IMG/VR virus record: IMGVR_UViG_3300020202_000001
Span: 1-64,000 of that record
DNA: 64,000 nucleotides
Strand: one strand, 5' to 3'
Part shown: positions 1,097-59,969 of the stretch, piece after piece
How positions within the stretch are numbered: the stretch's first letter is position 1
How the letters are laid out: each line of letters starts with the position of its first letter
The notes under the pieces: model-generated
What the model was told of the DNA's origin: nothing
What the model saw: only the letters and a program-made list of their open reading frames with translations
The model's database searches: none
Made by a program: the position numbers and the translations under genes

Positions 1097-1357
1097 CGCT
1101 GGACGGGCATGGACGTGGAACGGGGCCAGGGATGGCCACTGGGGACAAGGATGTCACCACCGCGTCCGGCCGGTTCGGTGGGCGTTTTGACGGACGCCCT
1201 AAGAGCCGCAGAGGAGATGAGGTGTGCCGACGCAGCTCGACCCTGCGACGGGAGCCTCAACAAGAAACGGGGGCGGCCAGTGACTCCTTGGCCGCCCCTA
1301 CATTGAAATCTTCCCTCCACAGCCCGACCGGCTCACCCACGCGGTCGGGCTTCTTTG
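1097..1357 (+). ncRNA. candidate CsrB/RsmZ-like small RNA
   Basis: Lies between a promoter and an intrinsic terminator; 9 GGA motifs in 1101-1253; hairpins GGCC-AGGGAT-GGCC and GAC-AAGGAT-GTC; no convincing ORF. Confidence 0.55.
1321..1356 (+). terminator. intrinsic terminator
   Basis: AGCCCGACCG...CGGTCGGGCT stem followed by TCTTT. Confidence 0.7.
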
Positions 1358-1423
1358 TAACTGGAGGTTCTAACCCGCCCCGGCCCAGCCGGCACGGGGC
1401 ATACTCGTAGCAAGGAGGCTCAG

Positions 1424-3085: not shown

Positions 3086-3173
3086 GGGTAGCATTTATGG
3101 TCTCATGCGGTTTCGGGCCGCCCGCAACCCCACAGCGGCCCAGTCCAGCGTTTCGTGAAAGGAGTCACGCACC

Positions 3174-3581
3174 ATGCGGACTTTCCGTTCCCGGTTCTCG
3201 GCCCTCGTGGCCGTCGCGTTCCTGTCCTCGCTCCTGCTCGGCCTGACCGGCTGCGGCGGGAAGAACATCAACACCGCCAACACCGGCGGCACGCTGACCG
3301 GCGTCGTCGACCGGCACGACAAGTACGTGCAGGCCGACCCCAACGTCGACCAGGCCGAGGCCCTCGCCGACTCGGCGGTGCTCAGGCAGGCGTGGCAGGC
3401 GGAAAGCGTACCGGCCAACGCGATCGAGGCCCCCTTAAACCGCGTCGCCGACCGGCACGACGGGTACGTCCAGTCGGACGGGACCCTGCCGCCCTACAAG
3501 CAACGCGCGAACCTACGCGACACCGCGATCCTGCGGGAGCTGCTGAAGGTCGGGAGGGCGACACCCGCCACCAACCCCTAA
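3174..3581 (+). CDS. putative lipoprotein
   Basis: Basic N-terminus, hydrophobic stretch, lipobox LTGC. Confidence 0.7.
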   Translation: MRTFRSRFSALVAVAFLSSLLLGLTGCGGKNINTANTGGTLTGVVDRHDKYVQADPNVDQAEALADSAVLRQAWQAESVPANAIEAPLNRVADRHDGYVQSDGTLPPYKQRANLRDTAILRELLKVGRATPATNP

Positions 3582-3659
3582 CGGCCGTCGCCCCGTAGCG
3601 GCGGCCCGCACCGCGTCCACGGACGGACGCACGAGACGACGTGACAAGGAGGTCACCCA

Positions 3660-4077: not shown

Positions 4078-4208
4078 GACTTTGCCGTAGACCCGATCGG
4101 GGGATGGTGGTTAAGATGGCCTCGCTCGAAGGAGTGTCACGGCACGGATGCCCCGCCCGCGTTGGGCGGTAAACAAGGACTTCTCTTGACCGTACCAGGC
4201 CCGCAATC

Positions 4209-4448: not shown

Positions 4449-4477
4449 TGCCCTCGACGTGCAAAGGAGTGCACACC

Positions 4478-8338: not shown

Positions 8339-8352
8339 TGTGAGGGAGAGAC

Positions 8353-9255
8353 ATGGACGTCGGTATCCCCGGCAAGATCTGGCCCGCCCGGCTGCTGGAG
8401 CCGCCGGTGCCGTGCCCCAACTGCCAGCAGCCCGTCAACGGGTTCGTCAGCGGCGAGAGCCTGTACAGCGGCAACTCGATCACCCGGTCGGAGTCGATCG
8501 AGGGCGTGCCCGCCTCGAAGCTCAAGTCGACGATCGTCTACACCCTCCACCCGTGCTACTGCCAGGTCGACCAATACTGGATGAGCGCGTTCTCCGAGGA
8601 GATGGGCCGCCGCGAGAAGGGCCGCCCGCCCCGCAGCGTCGAGGGCCGGTCCCAGGCGAACAAGGAGGCGATGGTCGAGGAGCTGCAGGGCCGGCTCCGC
8701 GCCCTGTACACGAAGCGGGACGCCGCGATCGTGGCCGACATCCCCAGCCGCAAGGCCGCGATCGAGCGGGAGATCTGCCTGCTGGTCACCGAGCTGGCCC
8801 GGGCGATCCCCGGGTCGCACAACAAGGTCGCCGCGATCGCGCTGGAGCCCGAGGTCCTGCAGTGGGCCAGGCAGTCCAAGCTGAACGTCCCGCCCGGCTC
8901 CGGCTCCAACCCCGAGCGGGCCGTTAAGCTCACGCTGGAGCAGATCCACAAGCACCTGCAGCTCGACCCGGAGTTCAACGAGAAGCAGACCGGCCGCCGG
9001 CTGCTCGTGCTCGCCCAGGCGATGTTCAAGGAGCTGCAGGACTTCGTGAACAAGGGCAAGCCGGTCAGCCAGCAGACCCTTCGCGTCGCCGGCAAGCTAG
9101 TACCCGGGGCCGAGGGCTTCATCGTCGGCCGCGAGGTCGAGGGGCCGGTGATCGACGACCCGGAGACCGTCTTCCAGGACTCCTTCGCCCGCCGCCGGCG
9201 TCGGCGGCTCGACGTGCGGAACGACGACGACGGCAAGGATGTGGATGACGAGTGA
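8353..9255 (+). CDS. hypothetical protein with N-terminal CPNC...PCYC Zn-finger-like motif
   Basis: GGGAG SD; high GC3. Confidence 0.6.
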   Translation: MDVGIPGKIWPARLLEPPVPCPNCQQPVNGFVSGESLYSGNSITRSESIEGVPASKLKSTIVYTLHPCYCQVDQYWMSAFSEEMGRREKGRPPRSVEGRSQANKEAMVEELQGRLRALYTKRDAAIVADIPSRKAAIEREICLLVTELARAIPGSHNKVAAIALEPEVLQWARQSKLNVPPGSGSNPERAVKLTLEQIHKHLQLDPEFNEKQTGRRLLVLAQAMFKELQDFVNKGKPVSQQTLRVAGKLVPGAEGFIVGREVEGPVIDDPETVFQDSFARRRRRRLDVRNDDDGKDVDDE

Positions 9256-9263
9256 GGTCGCGG

Positions 9264-9600
9264 TGGACGGGACACGCTTCGGCGGGGTATGCTAGTAGCA
9301 GGTAAGCCGTTGGCCGCGAGCGTCGGCCGGTAATGGACGGGTGGCGATGCCAAGGATGGCGACACCACCCACGGAACGGCGTCATGGCGTGAAGGCCCGA
9401 CGCCCGGTGGTGCGACGGAACGCTCAATTCGCCGTCGCAAACGGAGTCACGCTTAGCGGCGTGATACCACGGAGCCGGAAACCGACTCGGACGCGGCGGG
9501 CGAACCGCCGTGACAACCCCGAGGTGGCTGGGGAAACCGGCAGCGAGCTTACCGCAGTACAACGCACGGACGTACCCGTAGAGTCACGGAGGACTCGCCA
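9264..9600 (+). promoter_or_regulatory. putative promoter plus long GGA-rich structured leader or sRNA
   Basis: TGGACG-18-TATGCT; 8 ANGGA motifs in 9333-9591, three in clean hexaloop hairpins. Confidence 0.5.
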
Positions 9601-10073
9601 TGCCCGGCCACATTCTCGCCCAGAGCCTCGACACCTGGAACCCGCTGACCGTCATCATCGCAGCGGCGGTCCTGATCTACGTCGCCTGCCAGGGGGCCGT
9701 GATGGTCATCCGCGCCCTCCGCGGCGACAAGGAGAAGACCAGCTTCGAGCAGCAGATGGGCGGCATCCTGAGCCGGCTCGGCAACGTCGAGCAGCAGACC
9801 GGGAGCATCGCCAAGGACTTCGTCCCGCCCGACGCCTTCGCCGGGATGCTCAAAGGCCAGGTCCTCGACACGATCCTCGAAATCCAGCGGAGCCAGGACC
9901 AGCACGCGGCACTCGCGCGGCCGGTCGTCCCCCCGGCTCCGGTGGGCACCACGCAGACCACGGTCGCCGCCACGACGACCACGACGCAGCCCGTTCGGGC
10001 CGCAGCCCCCCGCCCGGCTCCAGCGCCGGGCACCGCCGTCCACACGGCGGCCGGGGCACTCGGTCAGCGATAG
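9600..10073 (+). CDS. membrane protein (N-terminal TM)
   Basis: Hydrophobic LTVIIAAAVLIYVAC; SD in hairpin. Confidence 0.6.
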   Translation: MPGHILAQSLDTWNPLTVIIAAAVLIYVACQGAVMVIRALRGDKEKTSFEQQMGGILSRLGNVEQQTGSIAKDFVPPDAFAGMLKGQVLDTILEIQRSQDQHAALARPVVPPAPVGTTQTTVAATTTTTQPVRAAAPRPAPAPGTAVHTAAGALGQR

Positions 10074-10105: not shown

Positions 10106-10690
10106 ATGGCCAAGTCGCGACGTAAACCCGAACGCACGGAGGCGTTTGTGCCAGTCAACGAAACCGAGTTTGACGCCGTTAAGGATCGGCTCACACGCAC
10201 GGAGTCGACCCTCTCCCAGGTCGTCGACTCGGTGGGCCAGGTAGCCGCCACCCAGCAGCAGCAGCAGGCGGCCCTCGGCTCCCTGTCGAGCGACATGCAA
10301 TCGCTGCTGACGCTGATGAAGACCAAGGACGGCCGCCTGGACATCCGCCTGCTGATGGCGGTGATCGGCGGGCTGGCCGCCGTCATCGTCCCGCTCGGGG
10401 CCATGTTCCTCGCCCCGCTCAAGACCCAGGTCGACAACCTGCAGCTGCAGATGATCCGCGATTTGGGCAACACCCGGACGGACATCGACGTGCTTCGCAA
10501 GGACGGGGCACCCGTGATCCGCGAGCGGCTGGCGGTCGACGAGGAGCGGGCTAGGATCACCGCCGCTCAGATCGCCGAGCTGCAGGACCGTGAGCGGGCC
10601 AGGCTGGAGGCGGAGGCCGCCGCCGGCCGGCGGTTCCTCTACGGCGGCACCCCGGCCCCGCACGTCCCCGCCCCGAAGGACACGCCATGA
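10106..10690 (+). CDS. coiled-coil protein with central TM segment
   Basis: LLMAVIGGLAAVIVPLGAMFL flanked by helical regions. Confidence 0.6.
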   Translation: MAKSRRKPERTEAFVPVNETEFDAVKDRLTRTESTLSQVVDSVGQVAATQQQQQAALGSLSSDMQSLLTLMKTKDGRLDIRLLMAVIGGLAAVIVPLGAMFLAPLKTQVDNLQLQMIRDLGNTRTDIDVLRKDGAPVIRERLAVDEERARITAAQIAELQDRERARLEAEAAAGRRFLYGGTPAPHVPAPKDTP

Positions 10691-11241
10691 TCGAAGTGCT
10701 CGACGGCCCCGGCTACTGGGACAGGCAGGCGTACGCCCTCGGCAGGCTCAAGGCCGCCGAGGACGACACGCCGACGCCCTCCTACAGCATGTCCGGCCTC
10801 CTGTACGTCTCCGAGGCGTCGGGGCGGCCGTGGGCGTGCCTGTCCGTGCCGAACGCCCTGGTCCGTGGCATGTTCGACGCGCTGACCGAGCCGGGGATCG
10901 AGCTGCCGATGACGGACGGGAAGCTGAACGCGCACATCAGCGTCTTCCGGCCCGAAGAGATCGAGATGCTGGGCGGACCCGAGGCACTAAAAAACGACCG
11001 AGGGAAGCCCTTTCGGTACTCCCTCGGTCGTCTGGTCGAGTTGACCCCGGCGGCTTGGGCCGACATGGCCAAGTGCTGGGTGCTTAGGGTTCATTCGCCC
11101 GAGCTGCAACAGCTGCGTCGAAGCCATGGGCTCTCGGGGCTGCCGAAGGACGGCGAGTACGACTTCCACATCACGGTGGCTGTCAGGCGGAAGGGCGTAC
11201 TCGGTCGCAACGACACCGCCAAGGCTACGGACGCGGCTTAG
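10687..11241 (+). CDS. 2H phosphoesterase superfamily protein
   Basis: Two Hx[S/T]x motifs, HISV and HITV, ~78 aa apart. Confidence 0.75.
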   Translation: MIEVLDGPGYWDRQAYALGRLKAAEDDTPTPSYSMSGLLYVSEASGRPWACLSVPNALVRGMFDALTEPGIELPMTDGKLNAHISVFRPEEIEMLGGPEALKNDRGKPFRYSLGRLVELTPAAWADMAKCWVLRVHSPELQQLRRSHGLSGLPKDGEYDFHITVAVRRKGVLGRNDTAKATDAA

Positions 11242-11729
11242 CAGGCCAGGCTAGGGGCGAAAGGGGACGGGGCCGCCTGACGGTTCTCGCGGCGGATCGC
11301 CTCGTACACTTCCTTACGGTGGACCGGGACGTCGGCCGGGGCCACGAACCCGAGCCGGACCTTGTCGCCGCGGATGTCGACGACCGTGTACTCGCAGGCC
11401 GTGGGTACCTTGTACCCCTCGCCCCTGCCGGCCGCGACCGCGTCGGCGAACTTCTGCAGCTCCGCGGGCTCCACCAGCACGATCGACTCGTCCCGCTGGC
11501 GGGAGAGGACGAGGTTGCCCCCGCCCTTGCGCTCGCGGACCGGCGGCGGCTGGTTGCCCCGGGCGATGTCCTGTAGGATCTGGACGTAGAGTTCCTTGCG
11601 GTAGACCTGGTACTGCTCCGGGGCCTTGATGCCGGTACGGACCTTGTCGCCGCGGATGTCAACGACGGTGACCTCGACGTCATCGCCGATGAGCGTGGAC
11701 TCGTCTCGTTGACGGGAGAGAACGAGCAT
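11238..11729 (-). CDS. csrA: tandem two-domain carbon storage regulator CsrA/RsmA
   Basis: Two repeats of LVLSRQRDES...TVVDIRGDKVR.G..AP....V.RKE.Y; the only well-supported minus-strand gene. Confidence 0.92.
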   Translation of the reverse strand: MLVLSRQRDESTLIGDDVEVTVVDIRGDKVRTGIKAPEQYQVYRKELYVQILQDIARGNQPPPVRERKGGGNLVLSRQRDESIVLVEPAELQKFADAVAAGRGEGYKVPTACEYTVVDIRGDKVRLGFVAPADVPVHRKEVYEAIRRENRQAAPSPFAPSLAC

Positions 11730-11730: not shown

Positions 11731-11746
11731 ATCGACTCCTTTCGAT
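11731..11746 (-). promoter_or_regulatory. CsrA-type hairpin over the csrA RBS (possible autoregulation)
   Basis: Minus strand reads ATCGA-AAGGAG-TCGAT immediately before the ATG. Confidence 0.65.
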
Positions 11747-11838: not shown

Positions 11839-13542
11839 ATGGATGGCACGACGACCGCGCAAATCTGTCTTCCGCGGGTGGAGCTGCCCCCGAGCGGACT
11901 GAACAACGCCCGCTTGGCCTTGTCGAAGCTGGGTGAGGCCCGAGCCCTCGCCGAAGAGGTGGCTTCCGCGGCTGCCGCCACGGACGTAAAACCCACCCTC
12001 GCTCAGCGTAAAGCCGGTAACTACAAGAAGGGGAAGGTCGCCATCCATGGCCTTGTGGTCTCCGTCGAAAACCCTCGGGGCTCATACCGCGAGGGGACCG
12101 CACCGGACGGAAGCAAGTGGCGTACCAAGATGGAGCACCACTACGGCGCGATCACGGGTACGACAGGACGTGACGGCGACGCGGTCGACGTGTTCGTCGG
12201 CCCCGACCCCGACTGCGAGCTGGTGTTCGTGGTCAACCAGAACGACCCGGCGACCGGCCGGTTCGACGAGCACAAGGTCATGCTCGGGTTCACGACCGAG
12301 GCCGACGCGCGGGCCGGGTACCTGGCCTGCTACGAGAAGGGGTGGAAGGGGCTCGGCTCGATCAAGCCGATGACCCTCGACGATTTCAAAAACCGGTTTT
12401 TGAAAGGCGACCTCACCAAGAGGGCCAAGGAAGGCGACCATGCCCGTAGCGAAGATGCCGCCGCAGAAGGTGAACCTGACCGGGAAGATCCTGCGGGGGA
12501 AGGACGGCCGCCGGCGGCAGATGGTCAGCGGCCAGCTCGTGATGCTCGACGGCCCGACGACGCCGGCGAGCAGGGCGGCGACTCCATCCTCGCCGGCCTC
12601 CCCGACGCCGCCGACCGGGAACCACCTGCTGTCGCCGCCGATGGTGATCGCGGACGCGGACGGCCTGGCGAAGGCGGCGAGCCGGGGGCTGAAGGTGGGC
12701 GTGCTGCGGTACCCGGACGGGTCGCTGGCGGTGGTGCACGGCCTGTCGGGGAAGAACCTGCTGACGGACCGCGGCCGGATCGACATGATGGTGACGCAGG
12801 CGGGCCACGACCCGAAGCGGCTGGTGAAGTTCGGGGAGATGAAGGCGGCGGACGTGATCCGCTACCGGCGGGAGAACGCGAAGCTCGCGAACCAGCCGAG
12901 CGGGCGGATGAAGGAGGCGGACGCGGACGCTGGACCGATCTACTCGCTGGTCTCGTCGGGCCTGCTGACGAGCGAGGAGGCGATGGCGATCCTGGGGACG
13001 ATCACGACGCCGACGCCGCAGACGCCGCACGGCCGGCTCCGGGCGATGGGCTTCAAGGACGAGCTGATCGAGACGATCGTGCGGGACAGCCCGGCGTCGC
13101 CGACGATGCTGGCGTCGCCGGCGGCGGCCCCGCCGATGATCCCCAAGCCGGCCAAGGAGAGGAAGCGGCGGATCGACCAGCTCCCCGACCCAAGACCGTA
13201 GCCGTCGACCTCGACGGCACGCTCGCCGAGGAGTACGAGACGTTCGACCCGAAGGTGATCGGCGAGCCGATGCCCGACGTCGTCGCCTGGCTCCGCAAGT
13301 TCAAGGCGACCGGGGCCGTCGTCATCATCTGGACCGTCCGCGGCGACGACGCCCTGGTCAAGGCCTGGGCCGACAAGCACCAGATCCCGTACGACTACAT
13401 CAACGAGAACCCGCACCAGCCGCCGGACAGCAGCGGCAAGCTCGTCGCCGACGTCTACCTCGACAACCGGGCGATCCGGGCGGAGGGGACGTGGGACGAG
13501 TTCGCGCCGGCGGTGCTGGAGCAACTTCAGGAGGCCGCATGA
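11839..13542 (+). CDS. inorganic-pyrophosphatase-like (polyvalent-protein InPase) domain + disordered linker + HAD phosphatase domain; start uncertain
   Basis: AGNYKKG..ENPRGS..YG.I.GT.G.DGDAVDVF..FDEHKVMLGF; C-terminal AVDLDGTLA and DVYLDNRA. Confidence 0.7.
   Translation: MDGTTTAQICLPRVELPPSGLNNARLALSKLGEARALAEEVASAAAATDVKPTLAQRKAGNYKKGKVAIHGLVVSVENPRGSYREGTAPDGSKWRTKMEHHYGAITGTTGRDGDAVDVFVGPDPDCELVFVVNQNDPATGRFDEHKVMLGFTTEADARAGYLACYEKGWKGLGSIKPMTLDDFKNRFLKGDLTKRAKEGDHARSEDAAAEGEPDREDPAGEGRPPAADGQRPARDARRPDDAGEQGGDSILAGLPDAADREPPAVAADGDRGRGRPGEGGEPGAEGGRAAVPGRVAGGGARPVGEEPADGPRPDRHDGDAGGPRPEAAGEVRGDEGGGRDPLPAGEREAREPAERADEGGGRGRWTDLLAGLVGPADERGGDGDPGDDHDADAADAARPAPGDGLQGRADRDDRAGQPGVADDAGVAGGGPADDPQAGQGEEAADRPAPRPKTVAVDLDGTLAEEYETFDPKVIGEPMPDVVAWLRKFKATGAVVIIWTVRGDDALVKAWADKHQIPYDYINENPHQPPDSSGKLVADVYLDNRAIRAEGTWDEFAPAVLEQLQEAA
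12384..12405. repeat. dispersed palindromic motif copy 3 (intragenic, perfect 22-bp palindrome)
   Basis: TTTCAAAAACCGGTTTTTGAAA. Confidence 0.9.
12440..13201 (+). CDS. hypothetical protein nested in another frame within the InPase-HAD ORF
   Basis: Own GCC-AAGGAA-GGC hairpin/RBS; this frame has the genome-typical GC3 and normal amino-acid composition. Confidence 0.65.
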   Translation: MPVAKMPPQKVNLTGKILRGKDGRRRQMVSGQLVMLDGPTTPASRAATPSSPASPTPPTGNHLLSPPMVIADADGLAKAASRGLKVGVLRYPDGSLAVVHGLSGKNLLTDRGRIDMMVTQAGHDPKRLVKFGEMKAADVIRYRRENAKLANQPSGRMKEADADAGPIYSLVSSGLLTSEEAMAILGTITTPTPQTPHGRLRAMGFKDELIETIVRDSPASPTMLASPAAAPPMIPKPAKERKRRIDQLPDPRP

Positions 13543-14380: not shown

Positions 14381-14514
14381 GCCCCGGGCAATTTCAACGA
14401 ATCGTGCGAAGGCAAGGAGGCCACACGTCAGCCTCCTCTTCGCGACTATGTCAGGCCCGACCTAACCGCCGGCAAACGGTGGGTCGGGCGAGGAAGTTCT
14501 AGGAGAGCTGGACT

Positions 14515-17864: not shown

Positions 17865-17917
17865 AGTCGGCCCCGCCCGTGGTATCATCGAAGGGCTGAC
17901 AACACTGGAGACGCGAC

Positions 17918-19066
17918 ATGGAGGTCGAACCCATCCCCAGCGTTGAGGAGATGGCCGCTTGGATGCGGCTGCCCCTCGCCGCCCTCAAACAGGCAGAGGA
18001 CCTGGCCGCGACGGCCTGGGACCTCCGCCAGTCGTTGCGCGGCGTCTACACGTCCGTCCCGGTCGGCGTGTACGTCCGCAGCCTGCACGACGGGTCGGTC
18101 AAGCTGGCCGCCGTCTGCGACGACACCGGCCTCGCCACCCCGCAGGACCTCGCCCTCGTCAAGTCCGCCGTCTCCCGCGTGGCCGACAACGCCGGCTGCC
18201 TCGACCTCACCGAGTTCAACGCCGAGGCCGCCCTGAGCCAGTGGACGAAGGTCGCGTACAGCCCCTTCCTCCGCCGCACCGGCGAGCTGCTGAACTTCTT
18301 CCCCGGCAAGTACCCCGGCGGCATCCCCAACTCGCCCGGCCCCGTCCAGTCGATGCTGACGAGCGGGCTGGTCGGCGCTGGCCTCGGGTACGGTGCCGGG
18401 TGGGCCGCCGAGAAGCTGATGCCGCAGACGTGGAAGAAGGGGCGGCTTCGCAAGACGCTGGCCGTCGCCGGCGGGCTGGCCGGGGCCGTGCCCGGGGCGA
18501 TCTGGGCCGGCTCGAACCTGCAGCAGGGGAAGGGCTTCAACGACAACTCGCTCCTCACGCAGCCCACGCAGATGAGCCCACAGGACATGCCGTGGAAGGC
18601 GGCGTTCGACTCGATCAAGCTGGGCACCCGGTACACCGAGGCGTGCGCCGCGTACGCCGAGAAGCTCGCCGCCGACAACGAGGGGATGCTCAAGGAGGCG
18701 TTCGGCGACTCCTTCGCGACCAGCTACGGCTCCGCCCCGCCGCCGAGCCCCATGAGCGTCAACGTCGACGCGATGGGCCGCACGCTGTGGGAGACCGGGG
18801 CCAGCCCGCAGACGGCGGGGATGACGATGGGTGCCCTCGCGGCCGCCCAGCAGATGCCCGGCGGCGACCAGCCCGGCTTCGTCACCCCGGCTCAGATGGC
18901 GAACCTGGCCGTCCACATGGGGGCCGGGTATCTTTCCGGGGCCGTCGTGGGTCACACGCTCGGCCTCCTCACCGGCATGCCGGATTCCACCGTGGATCGT
19001 CTGAAGCAGACGGGCATGTACCTCGGGATCGTGAAGTCCGTTGTCCCGAGGCTGTTCGGTCAGTGA
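17918..19066 (+). CDS. putative internal virion protein with Gly-rich hydrophobic helices
   Basis: GxxxG-rich segments, several KxA motifs; extended -10 TGGTATCAT at 17880. Confidence 0.55.
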   Translation: MEVEPIPSVEEMAAWMRLPLAALKQAEDLAATAWDLRQSLRGVYTSVPVGVYVRSLHDGSVKLAAVCDDTGLATPQDLALVKSAVSRVADNAGCLDLTEFNAEAALSQWTKVAYSPFLRRTGELLNFFPGKYPGGIPNSPGPVQSMLTSGLVGAGLGYGAGWAAEKLMPQTWKKGRLRKTLAVAGGLAGAVPGAIWAGSNLQQGKGFNDNSLLTQPTQMSPQDMPWKAAFDSIKLGTRYTEACAAYAEKLAADNEGMLKEAFGDSFATSYGSAPPPSPMSVNVDAMGRTLWETGASPQTAGMTMGALAAAQQMPGGDQPGFVTPAQMANLAVHMGAGYLSGAVVGHTLGLLTGMPDSTVDRLKQTGMYLGIVKSVVPRLFGQ

Positions 19067-19101
19067 GACGGACACGCGCGCGAAGCAAGGAGGCTTCGAT
19101 C

Positions 19102-19489: not shown

Positions 19490-19513
19490 GTTTCCCACGG
19501 AAGGGTTTGACAG

Positions 19514-19918: not shown

Positions 19919-19956
19919 ACGACCGGTAACTGACTGACGGACCGACAAGGAGGCGC

Positions 19957-42854: not shown

Positions 42855-42912
42855 TTCACCGGGCTTCGGCAAGAGGCCAGACTGCAAGGACGCGGTTCAC
42901 AGGAGACCAAGG

Positions 42913-44223: not shown

Positions 44224-44307
44224 CGCGGCCAGTCACGAACGTGTGTCCACTGAACCGGGCGGCATGAGGCCGTCCTCGAAACCCAGAAGATCACGGAGGA
44301 TCACCTT

Positions 44308-44766: not shown

Positions 44767-44858
44767 GCACCCGGGGGCGGCGACGCCCAACTGTGTCTCT
44801 TTCAACCTGAACGGATTCGCTGGGCCAGCCATGGCCCTTGTCACGGAGGACAATCACA

Positions 44859-45401: not shown

Positions 45402-45523
45402 GCACCGGGAGCAGTCGCAGCAGTGTTCTTTTGAGTCACCGTAGGCCGGTTACGCCTCAGGGATGAGGCGAGGCCTGCGGGAGACGGATCGACAACCACG
45501 ACAACGATCACGGAGGATCGACC

Positions 45524-46468
45524 ATGCCCGCAGGCATCACCACCCAGGAAGAGAGCCGCCTCCTCAACGAGGCCCTGTTCGAGAAGCTCTCCAGCCACGA
45601 CCCCTCGCTCGAAAAGCAGGCCGTGGACGCGGTGAACGACTTCACCCGCACGAAGATGCGCGAAGACGGCTTTTACCGGCGGATCATGCCGCCGCTGCCG
45701 ATCAGCAACGACGAGCTGGACCGCCAGGTCGACACCGACAAGCCGGTCAAGGTCGTCGACAAGGAACCGGACAGCCCGGCCGCGATCAGCATCCCGTTCG
45801 CGACGCTGCCGCAGAACCTGTACATCCGCGGCCCGCGCTACCGCGTGATGTTCGACCGCATCGTGACGCCCCGCTTCACCAAGGACGTCGACGAGCTGCG
45901 GACCTGGATCATGGACATCCGACAGGTGCTGTCGGACAACGCGATCAAGGACATGCTGGCGGAGGAGGACGGCAAGTTCGTCCGCGCCGTCAACACCGCG
46001 ATGGTCGGCGCGGGCCTGGTCGTCCCGACCAGCGGCGTCGTCCAGCACGAGGTCATCAGCGGCGGGATCACTCGCGACACCCTCTGGGACGCGATGAAGA
46101 TCATGCCGAACACCCCGTCGAACCTGGAGGTCCACACGATCCTGGTGAACCACATCACGATCAAGGAGATCTGCAAGTTCGGCCGCAACGAGATGGGCGG
46201 CGACCTGTCGCAGGACATCATGCGGAACGGGTGGACGCAGACGGAGTTCATGGGCAAGACCTGGATCATCACGATCAAGAAGGGTCTCGTGCCGACGAAC
46301 ACGATGTACATGTTCAGCGACCCGAAGTTCATCGGGAAGTCGTACGTGCTCGAAGACACGACGATGTACATCCGGCGCGAGGCGTTCATGCTGGAGTTCT
46401 TCGCGTACGAGACGATGGGTGGCTCGATCGGCCACACCAGCGGCCTCGCCCGCGTCGACTACCAGTGA
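45524..46468 (+). CDS. major capsid protein (HK97-like, inferred)
   Basis: Position after protease/scaffold; RTKMREDGFYRRIMPP, backbone-helix-like IKDMLAEEDGKFV; 314 aa. Confidence 0.7.
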   Translation: MPAGITTQEESRLLNEALFEKLSSHDPSLEKQAVDAVNDFTRTKMREDGFYRRIMPPLPISNDELDRQVDTDKPVKVVDKEPDSPAAISIPFATLPQNLYIRGPRYRVMFDRIVTPRFTKDVDELRTWIMDIRQVLSDNAIKDMLAEEDGKFVRAVNTAMVGAGLVVPTSGVVQHEVISGGITRDTLWDAMKIMPNTPSNLEVHTILVNHITIKEICKFGRNEMGGDLSQDIMRNGWTQTEFMGKTWIITIKKGLVPTNTMYMFSDPKFIGKSYVLEDTTMYIRREAFMLEFFAYETMGGSIGHTSGLARVDYQ

Positions 46469-47090: not shown

Positions 47091-47462
47091 ATGAGCAGGA
47101 CCGGACATTTCGACAAGAACTGCCTCTACTCGACGATCAAGAACGTCTCGGGTAAGAAGATGCGGTTCGGGTTCCTTCCGCCGCACGGCGTCGAGCTGGC
47201 CAACAACCAGGTCTTCACCGTGTTCGGCAACATCATCGAGGCCGTGGGCCGGGGCGACCGCGTCACCGACAAGCGGCAGTACCAGGCCCTCGCCGACGCG
47301 CTCGACCGGGGCGACATCGAGATCCTGACGACCCCGTCGCCGATCCTCCAGGACGCGACGACCGGGGCCAACAAGATGCTCCGGCTGAACAACGGTACCC
47401 TCAGCGCGGTCGACCCGTGCTGGCGGACCTCGGACAGCCTGGACTACGCCGTCGCGGCCTAA
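47091..47462 (+). CDS. hypothetical protein
   Basis: High-GC3 ORF. Confidence 0.55.
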   Translation: MSRTGHFDKNCLYSTIKNVSGKKMRFGFLPPHGVELANNQVFTVFGNIIEAVGRGDRVTDKRQYQALADALDRGDIEILTTPSPILQDATTGANKMLRLNNGTLSAVDPCWRTSDSLDYAVAA

Positions 47463-47514
47463 CGGCTGCAGCGGGGGAAGCCGGAGGCTTCCCACATCGC
47501 ACGGAGGCGAACGG

Positions 47515-47548
47515 AGCGGCTCACCCTCGGGTGGGCCGCTTCTGTTTT
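47515..47548 (+). terminator. intrinsic terminator
   Basis: AGCGGCTCACC/GGTGGGCCGCT stem + TCTGTTTT. Confidence 0.7.
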
Positions 47549-50413: not shown

Positions 50414-50429
50414 ACATCCTGGGAGGATG
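50414..50429 (+). promoter_or_regulatory. ACATCCTGGGAGGATG element over RBS (copy 1 of 3; others at 51261 and 52374)
   Basis: Identical 16-mer inverted repeat just before three start codons. Confidence 0.7.
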
Positions 50430-51224: not shown

Positions 51225-51278
51225 GGGGTCGGGACGTTCCCGGCCTCGTTCCAGTTCACCACATCCTGGGAGGATGTC

Positions 51279-52242: not shown

Positions 52243-52392
52243 GCAATCCCTCTCTCCCCCGAGGGCACCGGTCGCGGGGCGTGCCCCCACGCCCCCGCCG
52301 GTGTAAGGTCCCCCGATCGCCCGCGTGGGCGACGGGGCCGGGTCCCAAGCCCCGGAGCACCGAGAGTCGCCAAACATCCTGGGAGGATGACC

Positions 52393-54074: not shown

Positions 54075-54150
54075 ACCTATCGGCGGCGGTTATAGTGGAT
54101 GGCTCGCGGCCACGGACGGCCGCCCCCACGCGACAGAGCAAGGAGGCTCC

Positions 54151-56289: not shown

Positions 56290-56920
56290 GCGGCAGCTGC
56301 TGGGGCACTGCATCAAGGGGTCGCTCGCGCACATCGGGTGGCGGCCGATCCTGATGACCGGCCTGCTGCGGCAGAAGCTGATCGAGCACTTCGCCAACGT
56401 CAGGAACATCGAAGACCCGGCGCTGCGGGAGGGGCCGAGCCCGGCCGTCTGGCGTGAGATCCTCCCCACGGGTATCATGATTGAAACGGTGCACAGGTGG
56501 AGGGGCGATCTCGTCGAGAAACGCCCCGCCGTCCTGGTCAACCGAAACGCCTACCGGAACCTGAGGGTCGGAATCGGGGACCGGCATGTGGCAGACGGAC
56601 TTGGGTGGGAGCACTACACGACCCTCTGGGTAGGCTCCCACACCCTGTTCTGCATCCACGGATCGGGTGCAAGTTGCGAGATCCTGGCGACGGAGGTGCA
56701 GCGTGAACTCACGGAGTTCGCACCGGCGATCGTCCAGCAACTCGGCCTCCACAAGTTCCAGGTGACGGAGGTCGGCGCTATCGGCGAAGTTGAAGAGGCC
56801 CGGCAGAACTACGTCGTCCCCATCACGATCGGCTGGGCGTTCCAGCAGACGTGGAAGCTGGAGACGGCGGCCCTGCCCCTGGCGGCCGTCAGCTTCGAGG
56901 TGAACATCGAAGACTGTTGA
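56225..56920 (+). CDS. putative tail terminator/completion protein (start uncertain)
   Basis: Directly upstream of the sheath; alpha/beta pattern. Confidence 0.45.
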   Translation: MSHQTPATWCPPQSPTPPSQDRRQLLGHCIKGSLAHIGWRPILMTGLLRQKLIEHFANVRNIEDPALREGPSPAVWREILPTGIMIETVHRWRGDLVEKRPAVLVNRNAYRNLRVGIGDRHVADGLGWEHYTTLWVGSHTLFCIHGSGASCEILATEVQRELTEFAPAIVQQLGLHKFQVTEVGAIGEVEEARQNYVVPITIGWAFQQTWKLETAALPLAAVSFEVNIEDC

Positions 56921-56963
56921 GACGGATCTCGACAACCCCAACATTGGCACGGAGGCCAGTATC

Positions 56964-59858
56964 ATGCCCACGTACGTCATCCCCCAGGTCGAAGTCTTTC
57001 AGGATCTCCAGACCGCCCCCGCCGTCGTGGCGAACGCCCTGCGAGCCCACATCAGCGGGCCGCACGCGTACCTGCTCCGGTACGCCGACGAGGAGGAGCG
57101 GCCGCTCGGCCAGCTCGACTACTACGACAACCTGAACGACGTCGCCGTCGACTGGCCCCACCGCCCGGCCGGCGGCCAGGTCGACGAGCCCAGCGTGCGC
57201 CTGTTCGTCGAGGACGCGCTCCTGCGGTACTTCCAGGGCGCGGCCGGCAGCACGAGCGGCGGCGTCAAGGTCGCGGGCCACACGAACCGCGTCCGCGCGA
57301 CCGGCACGAACTTCGTCACCAACGGCAGCTTCACCCGCGACGCCGACCTGTTCGACCGCGACGTCCAGGTGGGCGACGTGGTCAAGCTGCGGTTCAGCAA
57401 CGGCGGCGACCCGATCACCGTCTGGTCGTACGTTAAGGGCGTGATCGGTGACGCGGTCGCGGCCGTCGTCGCCGCCGCCACCCGCGACGCCAGCAACGCG
57501 GCCACCGCCACGGCCCTCGCCACGCACAGCCAGGTCCGCGGGCCGTTCAACGCGGTCCAGATCACCGGTGCCAGCGCGGCCAGCTACAACCCGTACAAGA
57601 CGGGCAAGGTCACCGAGACGTACACGATCGTCGTGACCTCCAGCTCGGTCGGCGGCGACCACACGACCGCCACGCTCCGCGTCATCTCGGCCTCCGGGCT
57701 CGACGACGTCGCGGTCGTGACCCCGTCCGCGCAGGGCGTGGCCACCCCGATCGGGACGCTCGGCGCGACCGTGACCTTCAACGGCAACGGCAACGCCGAC
57801 GCCTCGCAGTCCGCCGAGGACCAAGGCATCCCGACCGACGACCTCCTGGTCGGCCAGAAGTTCCAGCTCGTCGCCCGCGCGGCGTTCACGCAGACCGCGG
57901 CCCCGACCAGCGGCGGCACCTACACGGACGAGAACGACACGACCTACATCGTCGAGGTCGTGAAGGGCTCGAAGTTCGCGGACGGCGTCCCGCAGATCAA
58001 GGTCACGACCACGACCGGGATCGACATCAGCGGCCCGACCAACGTGCCGGCCGCCGGGCAGGCGATCCCGATCGGCAGCCACGGCGTCACCGTCACCTTC
58101 GCCGGCCTCGGCCTCGCGAAGGGCGACCGGTTCTACGTCGACGTGACCGCCGAGGGCGTCGGCCCGATGCGGACGCTCGTGCTCGGCAACTCGATCCCGA
58201 GCGACGTCGCCGACAACGACACCGCGGACCTGACGCTGTACATCCGCCAGCCCCTGCTGGAGGTCAGCCGCAACCGCACCGACTCGGCCCCGCTCGTCAA
58301 CTTCGAGACGAGCGACGTCGAGATCACGATCAAGAGCGGGATCACCGCGTACGACCCGACGTGGACGGACGGCGGCGAGCCGCTCGCGCTGGAGCTGGAG
58401 AGCGAGAGCAGCCAGGGCTACGGCCGGCTGTACGTCGAGTACCGTGCGTGGGTGCAGGAGCTGTGTAACGAGGTCGGCACGATCTCGGACGTCGGCGAGC
58501 TGAACGACCGGATCTCCGGCCCGCTCGACCCGGCGAACCCGCTGAAGTGGGGCATCTTCAAGGCCCTGAGCAACAGCAACGGCGTGCCGGTCAAGTACAC
58601 GTCGGTCTGCAACCCGGACGACGTCGACAGCTGGACGAACGTGCTGGAGCTGCTGCTCGGCCGCGACGACGTGTACGGCCTCGTGCCGCTCACGCGGAAC
58701 GCGACGGTGCTCAGCCTGTACGCCGCCCACGTCGACGGCCAATCGAGCCCCGAGCAGGGCCTGTGGCGCGTCCTGTGGGTCAACCTGCAGGGCCTGGCGG
58801 AGATCCCGGTGGTCTCGGCCGGCACCACGGTCCCGGGCCACACGCAGGCGACCACGGCGGACGGCGGCGTCTGCCTGGCGAAGATCGTCGACAACCCGAA
58901 CGACGCGGGCACGCAGTACACGCTGCTGTCGGTGCCGGCCGGGAACGGCGACTTCATCAAGAACGGCGTCCGCGCCGGCGACATCGTCCGCGCGCTGTAC
59001 ACCAGCGACGGGTTCGGGAACTCGACGTACCAGGAGTTCGTCGTCGACCTCGTGCAGACCGAGGAGTCGCTCCGGCTGCTGGCCGGGCCGGCTGCCCCGA
59101 TCAACGCCCCGGCGAAGATCGAGATCTGGCGGAACCTGACCCCGACCGCCGAGGCGACCGCCATCGGCAAGGTGGCCGGGGCGTACGCCAGCCGCCGGGT
59201 CCGCGCCGTCTGGCCGGACACGATCGAGACGGCCGGGACGATCCAGGAAGGGTACCACCTGTGCGCGGCCCTCGCCGGCCTCCGCTCGGGCGTGTTCCCG
59301 CACCAGGGCCTCACGAACGTCGCGGTCGAGGGCTTCGACAACGTCGCCCGCACGACCAAGAAGTTCAACAAGCCGCAGCTCGACATCATGGCGGGCAGCG
59401 GCGTGTGGATCGTGACGCAGGCCCCGACCGGCGAGATCTTCACCCGGCACGCGGTCACGACCGGACCGTACGAGGACATCAACCAGCGCGAGGAGATGCT
59501 GACGTCGAACATCGACAGCATCTCGTACCGGTTCAAGGACACGTTCGCCCCCTTCATCGGGATCGCGAACGTGACCCCGAGCCTGATCTCCCTGCTCCGG
59601 CTGGAGATCATCTCGCTGATCGAGGTGCTGAAGACCGAGAAGTTCACGACGATGCTCGGCGGTCAGATCATCAACGCGACGATCATCGACCTGCGGCAGC
59701 ACCTGACGATCAAGGACCGGATCGTGCTGATCCTGAACCTCGAACTGCCGTACCCGTTCAACAACTTCGAGGTGCACCTGGTCGTGCCGTCCGCGTCGGC
59801 CGCCCAGATCGCCCTCGCCGCCCAGCCGGGCGCGACGACGCCGACCACCACCGGGTGA
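56964..59858 (+). CDS. contractile tail sheath protein
   Basis: N-terminal YVIPQVEVFQ, 964 aa, sheath-like C-terminus (CAALAGL..PHQGLTN, RHAVTT, IVLILNLELPYPFNNFEV). Confidence 0.8.
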   Translation: MPTYVIPQVEVFQDLQTAPAVVANALRAHISGPHAYLLRYADEEERPLGQLDYYDNLNDVAVDWPHRPAGGQVDEPSVRLFVEDALLRYFQGAAGSTSGGVKVAGHTNRVRATGTNFVTNGSFTRDADLFDRDVQVGDVVKLRFSNGGDPITVWSYVKGVIGDAVAAVVAAATRDASNAATATALATHSQVRGPFNAVQITGASAASYNPYKTGKVTETYTIVVTSSSVGGDHTTATLRVISASGLDDVAVVTPSAQGVATPIGTLGATVTFNGNGNADASQSAEDQGIPTDDLLVGQKFQLVARAAFTQTAAPTSGGTYTDENDTTYIVEVVKGSKFADGVPQIKVTTTTGIDISGPTNVPAAGQAIPIGSHGVTVTFAGLGLAKGDRFYVDVTAEGVGPMRTLVLGNSIPSDVADNDTADLTLYIRQPLLEVSRNRTDSAPLVNFETSDVEITIKSGITAYDPTWTDGGEPLALELESESSQGYGRLYVEYRAWVQELCNEVGTISDVGELNDRISGPLDPANPLKWGIFKALSNSNGVPVKYTSVCNPDDVDSWTNVLELLLGRDDVYGLVPLTRNATVLSLYAAHVDGQSSPEQGLWRVLWVNLQGLAEIPVVSAGTTVPGHTQATTADGGVCLAKIVDNPNDAGTQYTLLSVPAGNGDFIKNGVRAGDIVRALYTSDGFGNSTYQEFVVDLVQTEESLRLLAGPAAPINAPAKIEIWRNLTPTAEATAIGKVAGAYASRRVRAVWPDTIETAGTIQEGYHLCAALAGLRSGVFPHQGLTNVAVEGFDNVARTTKKFNKPQLDIMAGSGVWIVTQAPTGEIFTRHAVTTGPYEDINQREEMLTSNIDSISYRFKDTFAPFIGIANVTPSLISLLRLEIISLIEVLKTEKFTTMLGGQIINATIIDLRQHLTIKDRIVLILNLELPYPFNNFEVHLVVPSASAAQIALAAQPGATTPTTTG

Positions 59859-59969
59859 TCGGTCGAGTGAGTGAGGCCTTTCCCCCGGGGGCAACGTCGC
59901 CCCCGGGGGTCTTGCAAGGAAGCAAGGAAGCTGCCCCCGGCCCGGGGGCTCGGTTAAGGAGAACCGACC

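Follow-up and report, generated by a model that had tools for sequence, protein, structure and literature searches.

The analysed window comprised the first 64,000 nucleotides of IMGVR_UViG_3300020202_000001, the record of an uncultured jumbo phage with a 224-kb genome and a GC content of 69%. A csrA gene was located on the - strand at positions 11238 to 11729, and encoded a 163-aa protein that matched the Pfam family PF02599 twice with an E-value of 3e-35. The protein consists of 2 CsrA domains in a single chain (residues 1-56 and 71-152), which had not been noticed in the sequence-only reading, with an extra helix inserted between strands 2 and 3 of the second domain. Both domains retained the invariant LVLSR and R-K/E-E residues, the AlphaFold model had a pLDDT of 90.6 and a pTM of 0.79, and the best solved relative was 5dmb_D, a CsrA bound to FliW. 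The RBS of the csrA gene was covered by the hairpin ATCGA-AAGGAG-TCGAT (11731-11746, - strand), located 1 nt before the ATG. This hairpin was identical in the relatives L089 and L179, and was replaced by TGGA-AAGGAG-TCCA in the relative L180, but was not part of the minimum free energy (MFE) fold of the 70-nt leader.

Hairpins of the same type, in which a short stem encloses an ANGGAN loop, were found at many translation starts on the + strand. In the first third of the window, 2 non-coding hairpins, GGCC-AGGGAT-GGCC and GAC-AAGGAT-GTC, were located 19 nt apart (1124-1155) with no supported ORF behind them. RBS hairpins were identified at 1409-1420 (AGC-AAGGAG-GCT, 6 nt before start 1424), 3154-3169 (CGTGA-AAGGAG-TCACG, 9 nt before start 3174), 4459-4474 (GTGCA-AAGGAG-TGCAC, before start 4478), 10131-10146 (AACGC-ACGGAG-GCGTT, before GTG 10148), 12424-12435 (GCC-AAGGAA-GGC, before start 12440), 19081-19098 (CGAAGC-AAGGAG-GCTTCG, 9 nt before a 114-aa ORF at 19102-19446 with GC values by codon position of 0.70/0.41/0.91), and 19494-19505 (CCC-ACGGAA-GGG, before start 19514). 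A dual site at 3613-3656 consisted of GCGTCC-ACGGAC-GGACGC and the RBS hairpin GTGAC-AAGGAG-GTCAC, with the loops 27 nt apart, before start 3660, whereas a single upstream site, GGC-ACGGAT-GCC (4141-4152), was located 59 nt before start 4209. In 3 cases the start codon itself was located in the loop, namely GAC-AUGGAC-GUC (8350-8361, start 8353), CGAC-AUGGAG-GUCG (17914-17927, start 17918), and GCGC-AUGGAC-GCGC (19953-19966, start 19957). Furthermore, a conserved, structured non-coding leader or RNA was identified at 9256-9599, which contained 8 ANGGA motifs and ended in the RBS hairpin GAGTC-ACGGAG-GACTC (9581-9596) of the gene at 9600. It contained 14 GGA against 6.3 expected and showed 20 compensatory pairs against L089, but had no match in Rfam, and a search with nhmmer recovered it only in the window and in L089. 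We consider it a candidate CsrA-titrating RNA.

In the remaining part of the window, RBS hairpins were identified at 26152-26167 (GCGTC-AAGGAG-GACGC, before start 26173), 26566-26577 (CGC-AAGGAC-GCG, before start 26582), 33844-33857 (TTCC-ACGGAT-GGAA, before start 33861 of an 865-aa protein with no family match), 37174-37187 (GGTC-ACGGAC-GACC, before start 37191), 44289-44302 (GATC-ACGGAG-GATC, before start 44308), and 44838-44853 (TTGTC-ACGGAG-GACAA, before start 44859 of the gene just upstream of the capsid gene). A wobble hairpin, GACTGC-AAGGAC-GCGGTT, with 2 Watson-Crick pairs, or 6 pairs with G-U, was located at 42881-42898, 21 nt before start 42913. Dual sites were located at 28783-28816 (GCC-ACGGAC-GGC and AGGC-ACGGAG-GCCT, loops 21 nt apart) before GTG 28817 of the gene for the RNAP beta' C-terminal subunit (Rpb1_5), at 36477-36514 (GGC-AAGGAC-GCC and AGCA-ACGGAG-TGCT, loops 25 nt apart) before start 36518, at 45453-45520 (CGCCTC-AGGGAT-GAGGCG and CGATC-ACGGAG-GATCG, loops 51 nt apart) before the major capsid gene at 45524, at 54106-54149 (GCGGCC-ACGGAC-GGCCGC and GAGC-AAGGAG-GCTC, loops 28 nt apart) before GTG 54151, the product of which had a weak tail-fibre match in PHROGs, and at 56919-56958 (GAG-ACGGAT-CTC and TGGC-ACGGAG-GCCA, loops 27 nt apart) before start 56964 of a 964-aa protein. 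A triple site, CTTGC-AAGGAA-GCAAG / AGC-AAGGAA-GCT and TCGGTT-AAGGAG-AACCGA (59911-59967), was located before start 59970 of a 153-aa protein. An orphan hairpin, TCGC-ACGGAG-GCGA (47497-47510), was located in a 3' region directly before an intrinsic terminator (47513-47542) and is not an RBS. It was also noted that a variant with a 5-bp stem and a pentaloop, CATCC-UGGGA-GGAUG (50415-50429), preceded start 50433, with exact copies at 51262-51276 and 52375-52389 before starts 51279 and 52393; TGGGA is listed as a secondary CsrA motif (PMC4066749).

The sequence-only reading had reported more than 30 such hairpins at translation starts together with a phage-encoded CsrA, and this observation was confirmed. 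Each of the hairpins that it listed was present at its place, given that its coordinates mark the first stem base, with the only qualification that the hairpin at 42881 requires G-U pairs. Its labels for the capsid and RNAP genes were verified, but searches against Pfam and PHROGs did not verify the labels "sheath" and "tube" for the proteins starting at 56964 and 59970.

To examine whether the hairpins exceed expectation, as had been set as a test beforehand, we counted perfect Watson-Crick stems flanking ANGGAN. The + strand contained 304 ANGGAN motifs, of which 48, 27, 15, and 5 had stems of at least 3, 4, 5, and 6 bp, whereas the - strand contained 59 motifs with counts of 3, 1, 1, and 0, and the single strong one was the RBS of csrA. 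In 200 dinucleotide-preserving shuffles, the numbers for stems of at least 3, 4, and 5 bp were 6.8±2.4, 2.0±1.3, and 0.6±0.8, with maxima of 13, 7, and 4. The excess was located at translation starts: 33 of 67 ANGGAN motifs (49%) within -75 to +5 of a start were in a hairpin, compared to 8 of 212 intragenic motifs (3.8%), which is close to the base rate of 2.5%. Of the 48 hairpins, 21 had the SD in the loop 4 to 11 nt before a start, 3 had the start codon in the loop, 9 were second sites 25 to 59 nt upstream of a start, 7 were located in other non-coding DNA, and 8 were intragenic, which equals chance. Thus, 24 of 60 + strand genes, or about 40%, carry a hairpin at the start, in addition to csrA itself. 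A null model for SD-bearing leaders, in which the flanks were swapped, yielded 1.1, 0.2, and 0 where 20, 16, and 9 were observed.

The geometry of the hairpins was examined next. When loop size and register were varied, only a 6-nt loop with GGA at positions 3 to 5 was enriched (33 against 8.9), while every other loop size or register was at or below expectation, and an unbiased tally of all hexaloops placed ACGGAG and AAGGAG first. In about 2.9 Mb of sequence from relatives, NNGGAN had a stem of at least 4 bp in 3.76% of cases when position 1 was A, but only in 0.53% to 0.55%, which is the base rate, when it was C, G, or T. Position 2 was free (A 93, T 85, C 81, G 23), the closing pair was C-G in 200 of 282 hairpins, and 152 of 282 loops (54%) were not GGAG. 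Selection on the SD cannot explain this pattern, as had also been argued in the sequence-only reading. It equals the published A(N)GGA consensus and the RsmZ-2 hairpin CCCCG-AAGGAU-CGGGG that is bound by RsmA (PMC4066749). Furthermore, the window contained 9 adjacent pairs of sites 19 to 63 nt apart, against 2.05 expected, and the family showed a sharp peak at 20 to 29 nt (18 against about 1.8 per bin), which is inside the bridging range of 10 to 63 nt reported for CsrA. In context, however, MFE folding showed both hairpins in only 5 of 8 leaders tested. Both were present in the leaders at 3613-3656 and 36477-36514, only the upstream hairpin was present in the leader of the RNAP gene, and the capsid RBS hairpin was replaced by an alternative pairing.

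To study the conservation of the hairpins, we compared orthologous leaders from related phages. For the capsid RBS helix, which covaried in 53 distinct family leaders, 80.4% of cells were paired, against 60.5±1.9 when shuffled, and 51 cells had changes on both sides, against 17.4. None of 500 shuffles reached either value and all slid controls were lower, although the relatedness of the sequences inflates these shuffle-based statistics. A hairpin was present in 52 of 79 capsid orthologs and in 45 of 77 orthologs of the upstream gene, with 19 and 15 different stems, and 21 of 64 leaders orthologous to that of 42913 carried a perfect hairpin. In contrast, none of 72 leaders orthologous to that at 37174-37187 and none of 56 orthologous to that at 54106-54149 had a counterpart.

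The presence of a csrA gene and the density of hairpins were uncoupled within the family, and the phage CsrA is therefore not required. In the 76 of 80 syntenic loci of relatives that had no csrA within 10 kb, the hairpins were still enriched 12- to 18-fold, and none of those contigs appeared in the top-80 lists of 2 CsrA scans of IMG/VR. Two low-GC relatives that carry csrA, the L012 and L014 contigs, showed no enrichment, and unrelated viral contigs with csrA were barely enriched, with 62 against about 50 expected for stems of at least 4 bp once the window's own locus was removed. Enrichment was reproduced in relatives of 52% to 65% GC, but members below about 50% GC lacked it.

For comparison, we examined the loci of the 80 closest cellular CsrA proteins, about 75 of which belonged to Phycisphaerae or other Planctomycetota. 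The 4 loci for which the gene content was examined were fliW-csrA-flagellin loci. In the 80 loci, the same class of hairpin was enriched, with 120 against 10.9 for stems of at least 4 bp and 83 against 3.8 for at least 5 bp, compared to 2 and 0 on the opposite strand. The hairpins were located on the flagellin RBS and, as paired sites, in the csrA leader, and displayed the same signature of A at position 1, a free position 2, and C-G closure.

Taken together, we suggest, with a probability of roughly 0.6, that the hairpins are Csr/Rsm-type sites built into the translation-initiation regions of phage mRNAs across the whole jumbo-phage family, with the capsid gene and its upstream neighbor as the conserved core targets. 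The motif, its statistics, placement and covariation, the tandem CsrA, and the identical signature at the bacterial flagellin and csrA leaders were demonstrated here, whereas binding, repression, and a titration-type timing of translation are inferred from sequence alone. In this view, the ligand in most members must be the CsrA of the host, probably a FliW-partnered CsrA of Phycisphaerae-like Planctomycetota, although this part rests on an inferred host. No other recognizable RNA-binding domain was found among 56 window proteins. It is a difficulty for this reading that, if CsrA represses, the most conserved targets are just the genes that must be made in bulk, and that no antagonist was identified, since there was no CsrB/RsmZ-type RNA according to Rfam and no FliW domain in the window. 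A composition- or clade-linked structural role is also not excluded.

The sequence-only reading had inferred that the phage times its RNAP, head, and tail genes, which it thought to have host-type sigma70 promoters, with a translational switch operated by CsrA, and this interpretation was only partly supported. The match to Csr/Rsm sites held in every feature that sequence can test, namely A(N)GGA in a hexaloop, a C-G closing pair, overlap with the SD or start codon, and paired sites 20 to 30 nt apart, but a consensus scan of 42-61 kb gave 1 sigma70 site against 0.8 expected, and the claim of such promoters is not supported. Nor is the idea that the regulon is built around the phage-encoded CsrA. 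A self-contained circuit in which this protein is the dedicated master regulator and host CsrA is irrelevant is consistent with the intact RNA-binding residues and confident predicted fold of the tandem protein, with the hairpin on its own RBS, with the highest hairpin density in the family (10 to 11 per 20 kb against about 3), with several lineage-specific sites, and with the multi-GGA RNA at 9256-9599, which could serve as the antagonist. However, the enrichment in relatives without csrA at the syntenic locus and the weak or absent enrichment in other csrA-carrying phages make it doubtful. The core targets therefore probably predate the capture of csrA, although an ancestral csrA followed by loss in the large clade is not excluded.

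It is less likely that CsrA is not involved, and that the hairpins keep GGA(G) exposed in GC-rich mRNA, act as a standby site, protect against RNases, or bind another, unidentified family-conserved factor, such as a RegB-like nuclease acting on GGAG. The restriction to members above about 50% GC, the presence of the SD in most loops at starts, the lack of association with phage csrA, and the lack of a family match for most window proteins, which makes an unknown binder possible, are in line with this view, but the display of an SD does not predict the strict need for A at position 1 with a free position 2, the fixed hexaloop, or the C-G closure. Moreover, the 9 second sites are too far upstream to be an SD, the preferred spacing suggests a two-faced binder, and the identical signature is found next to csrA in Phycisphaerae. 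More remote is the possibility that the sites chiefly soak up host CsrA and thereby re-program host CsrA targets rather than regulating the phage genes themselves. The sites are of the high-affinity type on what should be the most abundant late mRNAs, those of the capsid gene and its neighbor, extra hairpins occur in non-coding RNA and a 3' region (1124-1155, 9256-9599, 47497), and phage Csr components have been proposed to manipulate host physiology (PMC8450108). However, 24 of the 40 non-intragenic hairpins are positioned exactly on an SD or start codon at ribosome-binding spacing, which a pure sponge would not need, and a phage that also adds CsrA would work against a sponge. Although 3-bp stems are common by chance in GC-rich DNA, chance or a composition artefact is refuted by the 7- to 25-fold excess over shuffles, none of which came near it, the specificity for strand, register, and location, the flank-swap null, the recurrence in relatives, and the covariation.

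In the favored model, a stem of 3 to 6 bp, usually closed by C-G, presents the ANGGAN loop, and many leaders carry a second, non-SD site 20 to 30 nt upstream. A CsrA dimer, which has 2 RNA-binding faces, would clamp the 2 loops, or 2 mRNAs, and hide the ribosome-binding site. In the sublineage of this phage, a csrA gene was captured next to a 2H-SAK gene, and in this phage and several close relatives it is duplicated into a single-chain tandem CsrA, which is probably autoregulated through the hairpin on its own RBS and would add a phage-controlled supply of the regulator. Translation of the hairpin genes would then depend on how much free CsrA is present relative to the number of sites, and the phages of this family thus appear to plug their protein synthesis into the CsrA system of the host.

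The window has a G+C content of 69% and is the first 64 kb of a contig of 224 kb (IMGVR_UViG_3300020202_000001). Codon-position GC statistics supported about 60 genes on the + strand, whereas one clear gene was located on the - strand at positions 11238-11729. The phage has no close cultured relative. A megablast search of the structural region against GenBank phages returned no match, and the nearest cultured capsids, in Salmonella phage Arash, Vibrio phages and Bacillus phage G, were only 26% to 28% identical. However, the major capsid protein (45524-46468) has at least 112 relatives with 64% to 88% identity on IMG/VR contigs of 150 to 230 kb, and the phage therefore belongs to a large family of uncultured jumbo phages. 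It encodes a multisubunit RNA polymerase with an unusual fused and split arrangement, in which one ORF of 1,501 amino acids (21647-26152, + strand) combines beta domains (Rpb2_3, Rpb2_6) with beta' N-terminal domains (Rpb1_1, Rpb1_2), while a separate ORF of 918 amino acids (28817-31573, + strand) carries Rpb1_5. ARAGORN placed genes for tRNA-Tyr (3438-3526, - strand) and tRNA-Lys (20067-20146, - strand) antisense inside well-supported coding frames, and these were discounted as probable false positives. Searches against PHROGs gave almost no annotation for the hairpin-bearing genes and no support for the sheath and tube labels given to 2 of them in the sequence-only reading.

That reading had listed ANGGAN-hexaloop hairpins at many translation starts, and this observation was confirmed, as every listed hairpin is present. 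The + strand contained 304 ANGGAN hexamers, of which 48, 27, 15 and 5 were flanked by perfect stems of at least 3, 4, 5 and 6 bp, respectively. By comparison, 200 dinucleotide-preserving shuffles gave 6.8±2.4, 2.0±1.3 and 0.6±0.8 for stems of at least 3, 4 and 5 bp. On the - strand, the corresponding observed numbers were 3, 1, 1 and 0, and the one strong case was the ribosome-binding site (RBS) of the csrA gene. An unbiased list of all perfect hexaloop hairpins was headed by ACGGAG and AAGGAG. Only a loop of 6 bases with GGA at loop positions 3-5 was enriched, with 33 observed against 8.9 expected for stems of 4 bp or more, whereas all other loop sizes and registers were at or below expectation.

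The excess was found entirely at translation starts. Within -75 to +5 of a start, 33 of 67 ANGGAN motifs were in hairpins, whereas inside genes the figure was 8 of 212, which is the chance rate. Of the 48 hairpins, 21 held the Shine-Dalgarno (SD) sequence in the loop 4 to 11 nt before a start codon, 3 held the AUG itself, 9 were second sites located 25 to 59 nt upstream, 7 were located in other non-coding DNA and 8 were intragenic. In total, 24 of 60 genes on the + strand, plus csrA, have such a site, and the figure was 19 of 42 among genes with at least 25 nt of upstream spacer. We also swapped the 5' and 3' flanks between SD-bearing leaders, which keeps every SD-linked composition bias, and this null expected 1.1, 0.2 and 0 hairpins where 20, 16 and 9 were seen.

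A few further elements were noted in the window. An orphan ACGGAG hairpin (47497-47510, + strand) is directly followed by a strong intrinsic terminator with a 13-bp stem and a T run (47513-47542, + strand), downstream of the gene at 47091-47462. The exact 15-mer CATCC-TGGGA-GGATG, with a 5-bp stem and a UGGGA pentaloop, is repeated 3 times on the + strand (50415-50429, 51262-51276 and 52375-52389), each copy 2 to 3 nt before the ATG of a different gene (starts at 50433, 51279 and 52393). At 14405-14445 (+ strand), in GAAGGCAAGGAGGC...GCCTCCTCTTC, an SD-like AAGGAGG can pair with a downstream anti-SD-like CCTCCT, and no ORF follows within ribosome-binding distance.

The loops are not explained by SD selection alone. 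In the window, loop position 1 was A in 27 of 33 NNGGAN hairpins, position 2 was free, and the closing pair was C-G in 26 of 33. In about 2.9 Mb of related phage DNA, excluding this contig, NNGGAN had a stem of 4 bp or more in 3.76% of cases when position 1 was A, but in only 0.53% to 0.55%, the base rate, when position 1 was C, G or T. Position 2 was free (A 93, T 85, C 81, G 23), position 6 was G in only 130 of 282, so that 54% of the loops were not GGAG, and the closing pair was C-G in 200 of 282. An A that is required 2 bases before GGA, with any base in between, is not what pairing to the 3' end of the 16S rRNA predicts, nor do the upstream second sites and the covarying stems fit. It is instead the published A(N)GGA consensus of CsrA/RsmA, and the architecture equals that of RsmZ stem-loop 2 (CCCCG-AAGGAU-CGGGG), which has been used as a binding standard (PMC4066749); GCC-AAGGAT-GGC is one example of a hairpin type with this architecture. 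Furthermore, the window contained 9 adjacent hairpin pairs at distances of 19 to 63 nt, against 2.05 expected, 6 of which were at 19 to 28 nt, and the family showed a sharp peak at 20 to 29 nt (18 against about 1.8 per 10-nt bin). These distances are inside the range of 10 to 63 nt over which a CsrA dimer bridges 2 sites (PMC4066749).

To study the conservation of the hairpins, we anchored the capsid leaders of the family on the A-N-GGAG nearest the gene, which resulted in 53 distinct sequences, while 9 loci lacked the motif. The 5 flanking pairs were formed in 80.4% of cells, against 60.5±1.9 when shuffled, and 51 cells had changes on both sides, against 17.4±4.1. In both cases, none of 500 shuffles reached the observed value, and every slid control was lower. 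The stems included CGATC/GATCG, GATC/GATC, GCAC/GTGC, GGAAC/GTTCC, AGAAC/GTTCT, AAGAC/GTCTT, TTTC/GAAA and TAAC/GTTA. Relatedness among the sequences inflates such statistics, but the variety of stems under an invariant loop is plain. A gene-by-gene comparison showed that hairpins were present at 52 of 79 orthologs of the capsid gene, at 45 of 77 orthologs of the gene immediately upstream (start 44859) and at 21 of 64 orthologs of the gene starting at 42913. They were rare at genes that lack them in the window, and absent from the orthologs of the genes starting at 37191 (0 of 72) and 54151 (0 of 56). There is thus a conserved core plus lineage-specific additions, and this phage has 3 to 4 times the mean hairpin density of the family. 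Folding of the leaders in context by minimum free energy reproduced both hairpins in 5 of 8 leaders tested, but not the RBS hairpins of the capsid gene or csrA.

The ORF at 11238-11729 on the - strand encodes a CsrA-family protein with 2 full domains in a single chain of 163 residues. It matched PF02599 in 2 stretches with 120.4 bits, against a cut-off of 27, and 9 solved CsrA/RsmA/RsmE chains matched with E-values of 4e-11 to 3e-7, the first among them being 5dmb_D, the CsrA bound to FliW. The RNA-contact residues of the N-terminal L-x-L-x-R strand and the Arg44-equivalent in strand 5 were invariant in both domains across 12 tandem proteins (L2, L4, R6 and R44 in the first domain, and L73, L75, R77 and R138 in the second). 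AlphaFold predicted a compact model of 2 five-strand-plus-helix units with high confidence (pLDDT 90.6, pTM 0.79), while Foldseek aligned only one CsrA chain at a time, so that an arrangement of the 2 domains like that of the interlocked CsrA homodimer, with its 2 identical RNA-binding faces, is only a possibility. An extra helix (residues 88-99) was predicted between strands 2 and 3 of the second unit. RsmN/RsmF of Pseudomonas aeruginosa, which has a rearranged CsrA fold, also has a helix between strands 2 and 3, but domain 2 of the phage protein keeps the normal C-terminal helix, Foldseek ranked RsmN/RsmF (4kji, 4k59) below canonical CsrA chains, and the insertion was present only in a few phage copies.

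Tandem CsrAs were also identified in a few other phages and in bacteria, although we found no paper describing them. One bacterial tandem CsrA of 192 amino acids is encoded between uvrB and uvrA on a contig of 854 kb (locus L093, 10001-10579). The surrounding 20 kb showed no hairpin enrichment, so a tandem CsrA by itself does not imply nearby hairpins. In the phage, the RBS of csrA sits in ATCGA-AAGGAG-TCGAT, which was identical in 2 relatives and replaced by TGGA-AAGGAG-TCCA in a third, a pattern that fits autoregulation.

The interpretation given in the sequence-only reading, that the phage times its RNA polymerase, head and tail genes by a translational CsrA switch with a phage-encoded CsrA, was only partly supported. 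In every family member that has it, csrA is adjacent and convergent to a 2H-SAK (2H phosphoesterase) gene. These members are the window, L089 (the closest relative), the related locus L090, the L006 and L002 contigs, and the low-GC L012 and L014 contigs. The 2H-SAK gene, located at 10687-11241 (+ strand) in the window and with syntenic genes in L089, L090, L179, L180, L326 and L332, is conserved across the family even where csrA is absent. Scans of IMG/VR with the tandem CsrA, with an alignment of 3 2H-SAK sequences or with RNR-small found only the window's own contig or unrelated phages, and an alignment of 5 2H-SAK sequences was needed. With 2H-SAK as the anchor, 76 of 80 family loci had no CsrA domain within 10 kb. 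These 1.14 Mb nevertheless contained 181 hairpins with stems of 4 bp or more, against 15.1 expected, and 81 with stems of 5 bp or more, against 4.6, while the 4 csrA-positive loci contained 15 against 2.2. None of the hairpin-rich csrA-negative contigs was among the best 80 of 133 to 219 hits in 2 IMG/VR-wide CsrA scans, although a csrA gene elsewhere in those genomes is not excluded.

Conversely, the csrA-positive low-GC contigs showed no enrichment around the capsid gene, and 79 unrelated csrA-carrying viral contigs were barely enriched. This comparison is based on locus-wide totals only, since many tblastn match starts in the 80 unrelated csrA loci are not the true ATG, which makes a count of hairpins on the csrA RBS unreliable. 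Family members with a GC content below about 50% generally lacked the hairpins (loci L007, L008, L011, L012, L014, L027, L074-L076, L078-L080, L184 and L253), which may relate to clade, host or composition. The hypothesis that hairpin density follows the phage csrA was therefore rejected, and the trait belongs to a clade of the family rather than to possession of a phage csrA. The suggestion that the genes have host-type sigma70 promoters was not supported by a consensus scan of 42-61 kb, which identified 1 site against 0.8 expected.

The closest cellular homologs of the phage protein were almost all from Phycisphaerae and other Planctomycetota, accounting for about 75 of the top 80 genomes, with up to 77% identity. 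All 4 loci for which the gene content was examined had the order fliW-csrA-flagellin. In the 80 bacterial loci (L342-L421; 0.44 Mb), the same hairpin class (for example L338, 10407-10426) was enriched 11- to 22-fold on the csrA strand, with 120 against 10.9 expected for stems of 4 bp or more and 83 against 3.8 for 5 bp or more, whereas the other strand had 2 and 0. The hairpins were located on the flagellin RBS, as (GA)CAATC-A[A/C/T]GGAG-GATTG(TC) followed by ATG, and also as TCAGTC/GACTGA and TGACATTC/GAATGTCA, and as paired sites with quite different stems in the csrA leader. The signature was the same, in that A was required at position 1 (7.4% against 0.5% to 1.0%), position 2 was C, A or T, and the closing pair was C-G in 79 of 120. 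Flagellin mRNA and csrA itself are the textbook CsrA targets in FliW-type systems, as established for Bacillus subtilis and others, though not in Planctomycetota. The phage hairpins cannot be told apart from what are very probably the native CsrA sites of the lineage that donated the gene, which is likely the host lineage, although this host assignment is indirect and a host CsrA is inferred only from the closest homologs.

The analysis demonstrates the architecture of the sites, their placement, covariation and pairing, and the presence of a tandem CsrA with its own site, whereas the binding of CsrA, its effect on translation and the timing are inferred from sequence alone. In this model, CsrA, from the host in most of the family and from both host and phage here, would bind the loops, bridge paired sites through its 2 faces and occlude the SD sequence or start codon. 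Because the sites sit on genes whose mRNAs become very abundant, the likely behavior would be titration, in which translation is held back until transcripts, or a decoy RNA, outnumber free CsrA, giving a sharp onset. With regard to an antagonist, no Rfam family matched in the window or at 9200-9650, and Pfam identified neither FliW nor any RNA-binding domain other than CsrA among 56 window proteins, most of which cannot be annotated and which represent only 64 of the 224 kb. One candidate antagonist is a conserved, highly structured non-coding region of about 300 nt upstream of gene 9600 (9256-9599, + strand), with 8 ANGGA motifs where 1.6 are expected and 20 compensatory pairs against L089. 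An nhmmer search identified this region only in the window and L089, so its distribution does not bear on a link to CsrA.

Of the alternatives, SD selection without a regulator was ruled out by the loop signature and the flank swaps, but the dependence on GC content or clade leaves room for a structural role of the hairpins. A circuit run by the phage's own CsrA is hard to reconcile with the enrichment at loci that have no csrA within 10 kb. In the preferred reading, a family of uncultured jumbo phages would have wired its capsid, scaffold-like and many other genes into the probably FliW-type CsrA circuit of the host, and one sublineage would have gone further by capturing csrA and fusing 2 copies into a single-chain pseudo-dimer. 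It is possible, though we consider it unlikely, that this lineage now runs a self-contained viral Csr system with an autoregulated regulator, at least 24 target start sites and possibly its own multi-GGA RNA antagonist at 9256-9599, giving a titration-type switch for virion protein synthesis.

CsrA sites at SD hairpins, two-site bridging and csrA autoregulation are textbook features of the Csr/Rsm system, in which CsrA, RsmA or RsmE binds A(N)GGA in hairpin loops at SD sequences, as in glgC, pgaA and csrA of E. coli, hcnA of Pseudomonas and the RsmZ/RsmY stem-loops. The phage shares the A-N-GGA loop with C-G closure, the overlap with the SD, the 2 sites within bridging range and a regulator gene that carries its own site. 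However, the putative targets are phage genes, about 40% of those in the window and including the capsid gene, rather than host metabolic or virulence genes, no CsrB/RsmZ-type sponge was found with Rfam, and the regulator is a single-chain fusion of 2 CsrA domains. In the FliW-CsrA-flagellin partner-switch circuit (Bacillus subtilis hag, Campylobacter, Borrelia; structure 5DMB of Geobacillus CsrA-FliW), the CsrA type is the closest in sequence to domain 1 of the phage protein, as are the Phycisphaerae CsrAs encoded between fliW and flagellin, but no FliW domain was found among the window proteins. Phage translational repressors that act at the RBS, such as the MS2/Qbeta coat protein on the replicase operator, T4 RegA and T4 RegB cleavage at GGAG, control many phage genes through a short RNA element, as is proposed here, but with different proteins and RNA motifs. 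Here, the motif is the host-type CsrA site, and the regulator, where present, is a captured bacterial protein.

CsrA/Rsm homologs borne by phages and plasmids have been surveyed (PMC7366521; PMC8450108), including those of Pseudomonas phages F116 and phi297, Burkholderia DC1 and the plasmid RsmQ-type proteins, and we identified matches in 81 GenBank phage records and more than 200 IMG/VR stretches. Those proteins are single-domain, and the proposed role was the manipulation of host targets such as CRISPR-Cas. In the papers found, there was no report of a phage whose own genes carry CsrA sites genome-wide. What is new is therefore a putative Csr-type translational regulon on the start sites of a jumbo phage family's own genes, with a fused CsrA in one sublineage.

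CsrA is one of the main post-transcriptional regulators of bacteria, and phage-borne csrA genes have been catalogued without being given a role on the phage's own genes. The same analysis defines, from sequence alone, the probable CsrA site and core regulon (flagellin and csrA) in Phycisphaerae, where the system is unstudied, and the hairpin signature could serve as a host-prediction clue for these uncultured phages. If the sites are real, a natural single-chain CsrA whose 2 RNA-binding faces can diverge would be useful for understanding two-site bridging, and there would be a concrete reason why phages pick up csrA. A large family of phages of 150 to 230 kb would then use a host-type RNA-binding regulator to gate translation of its virion genes, which would be a new layer of phage developmental control beyond transcription by the phage's own RNA polymerase.
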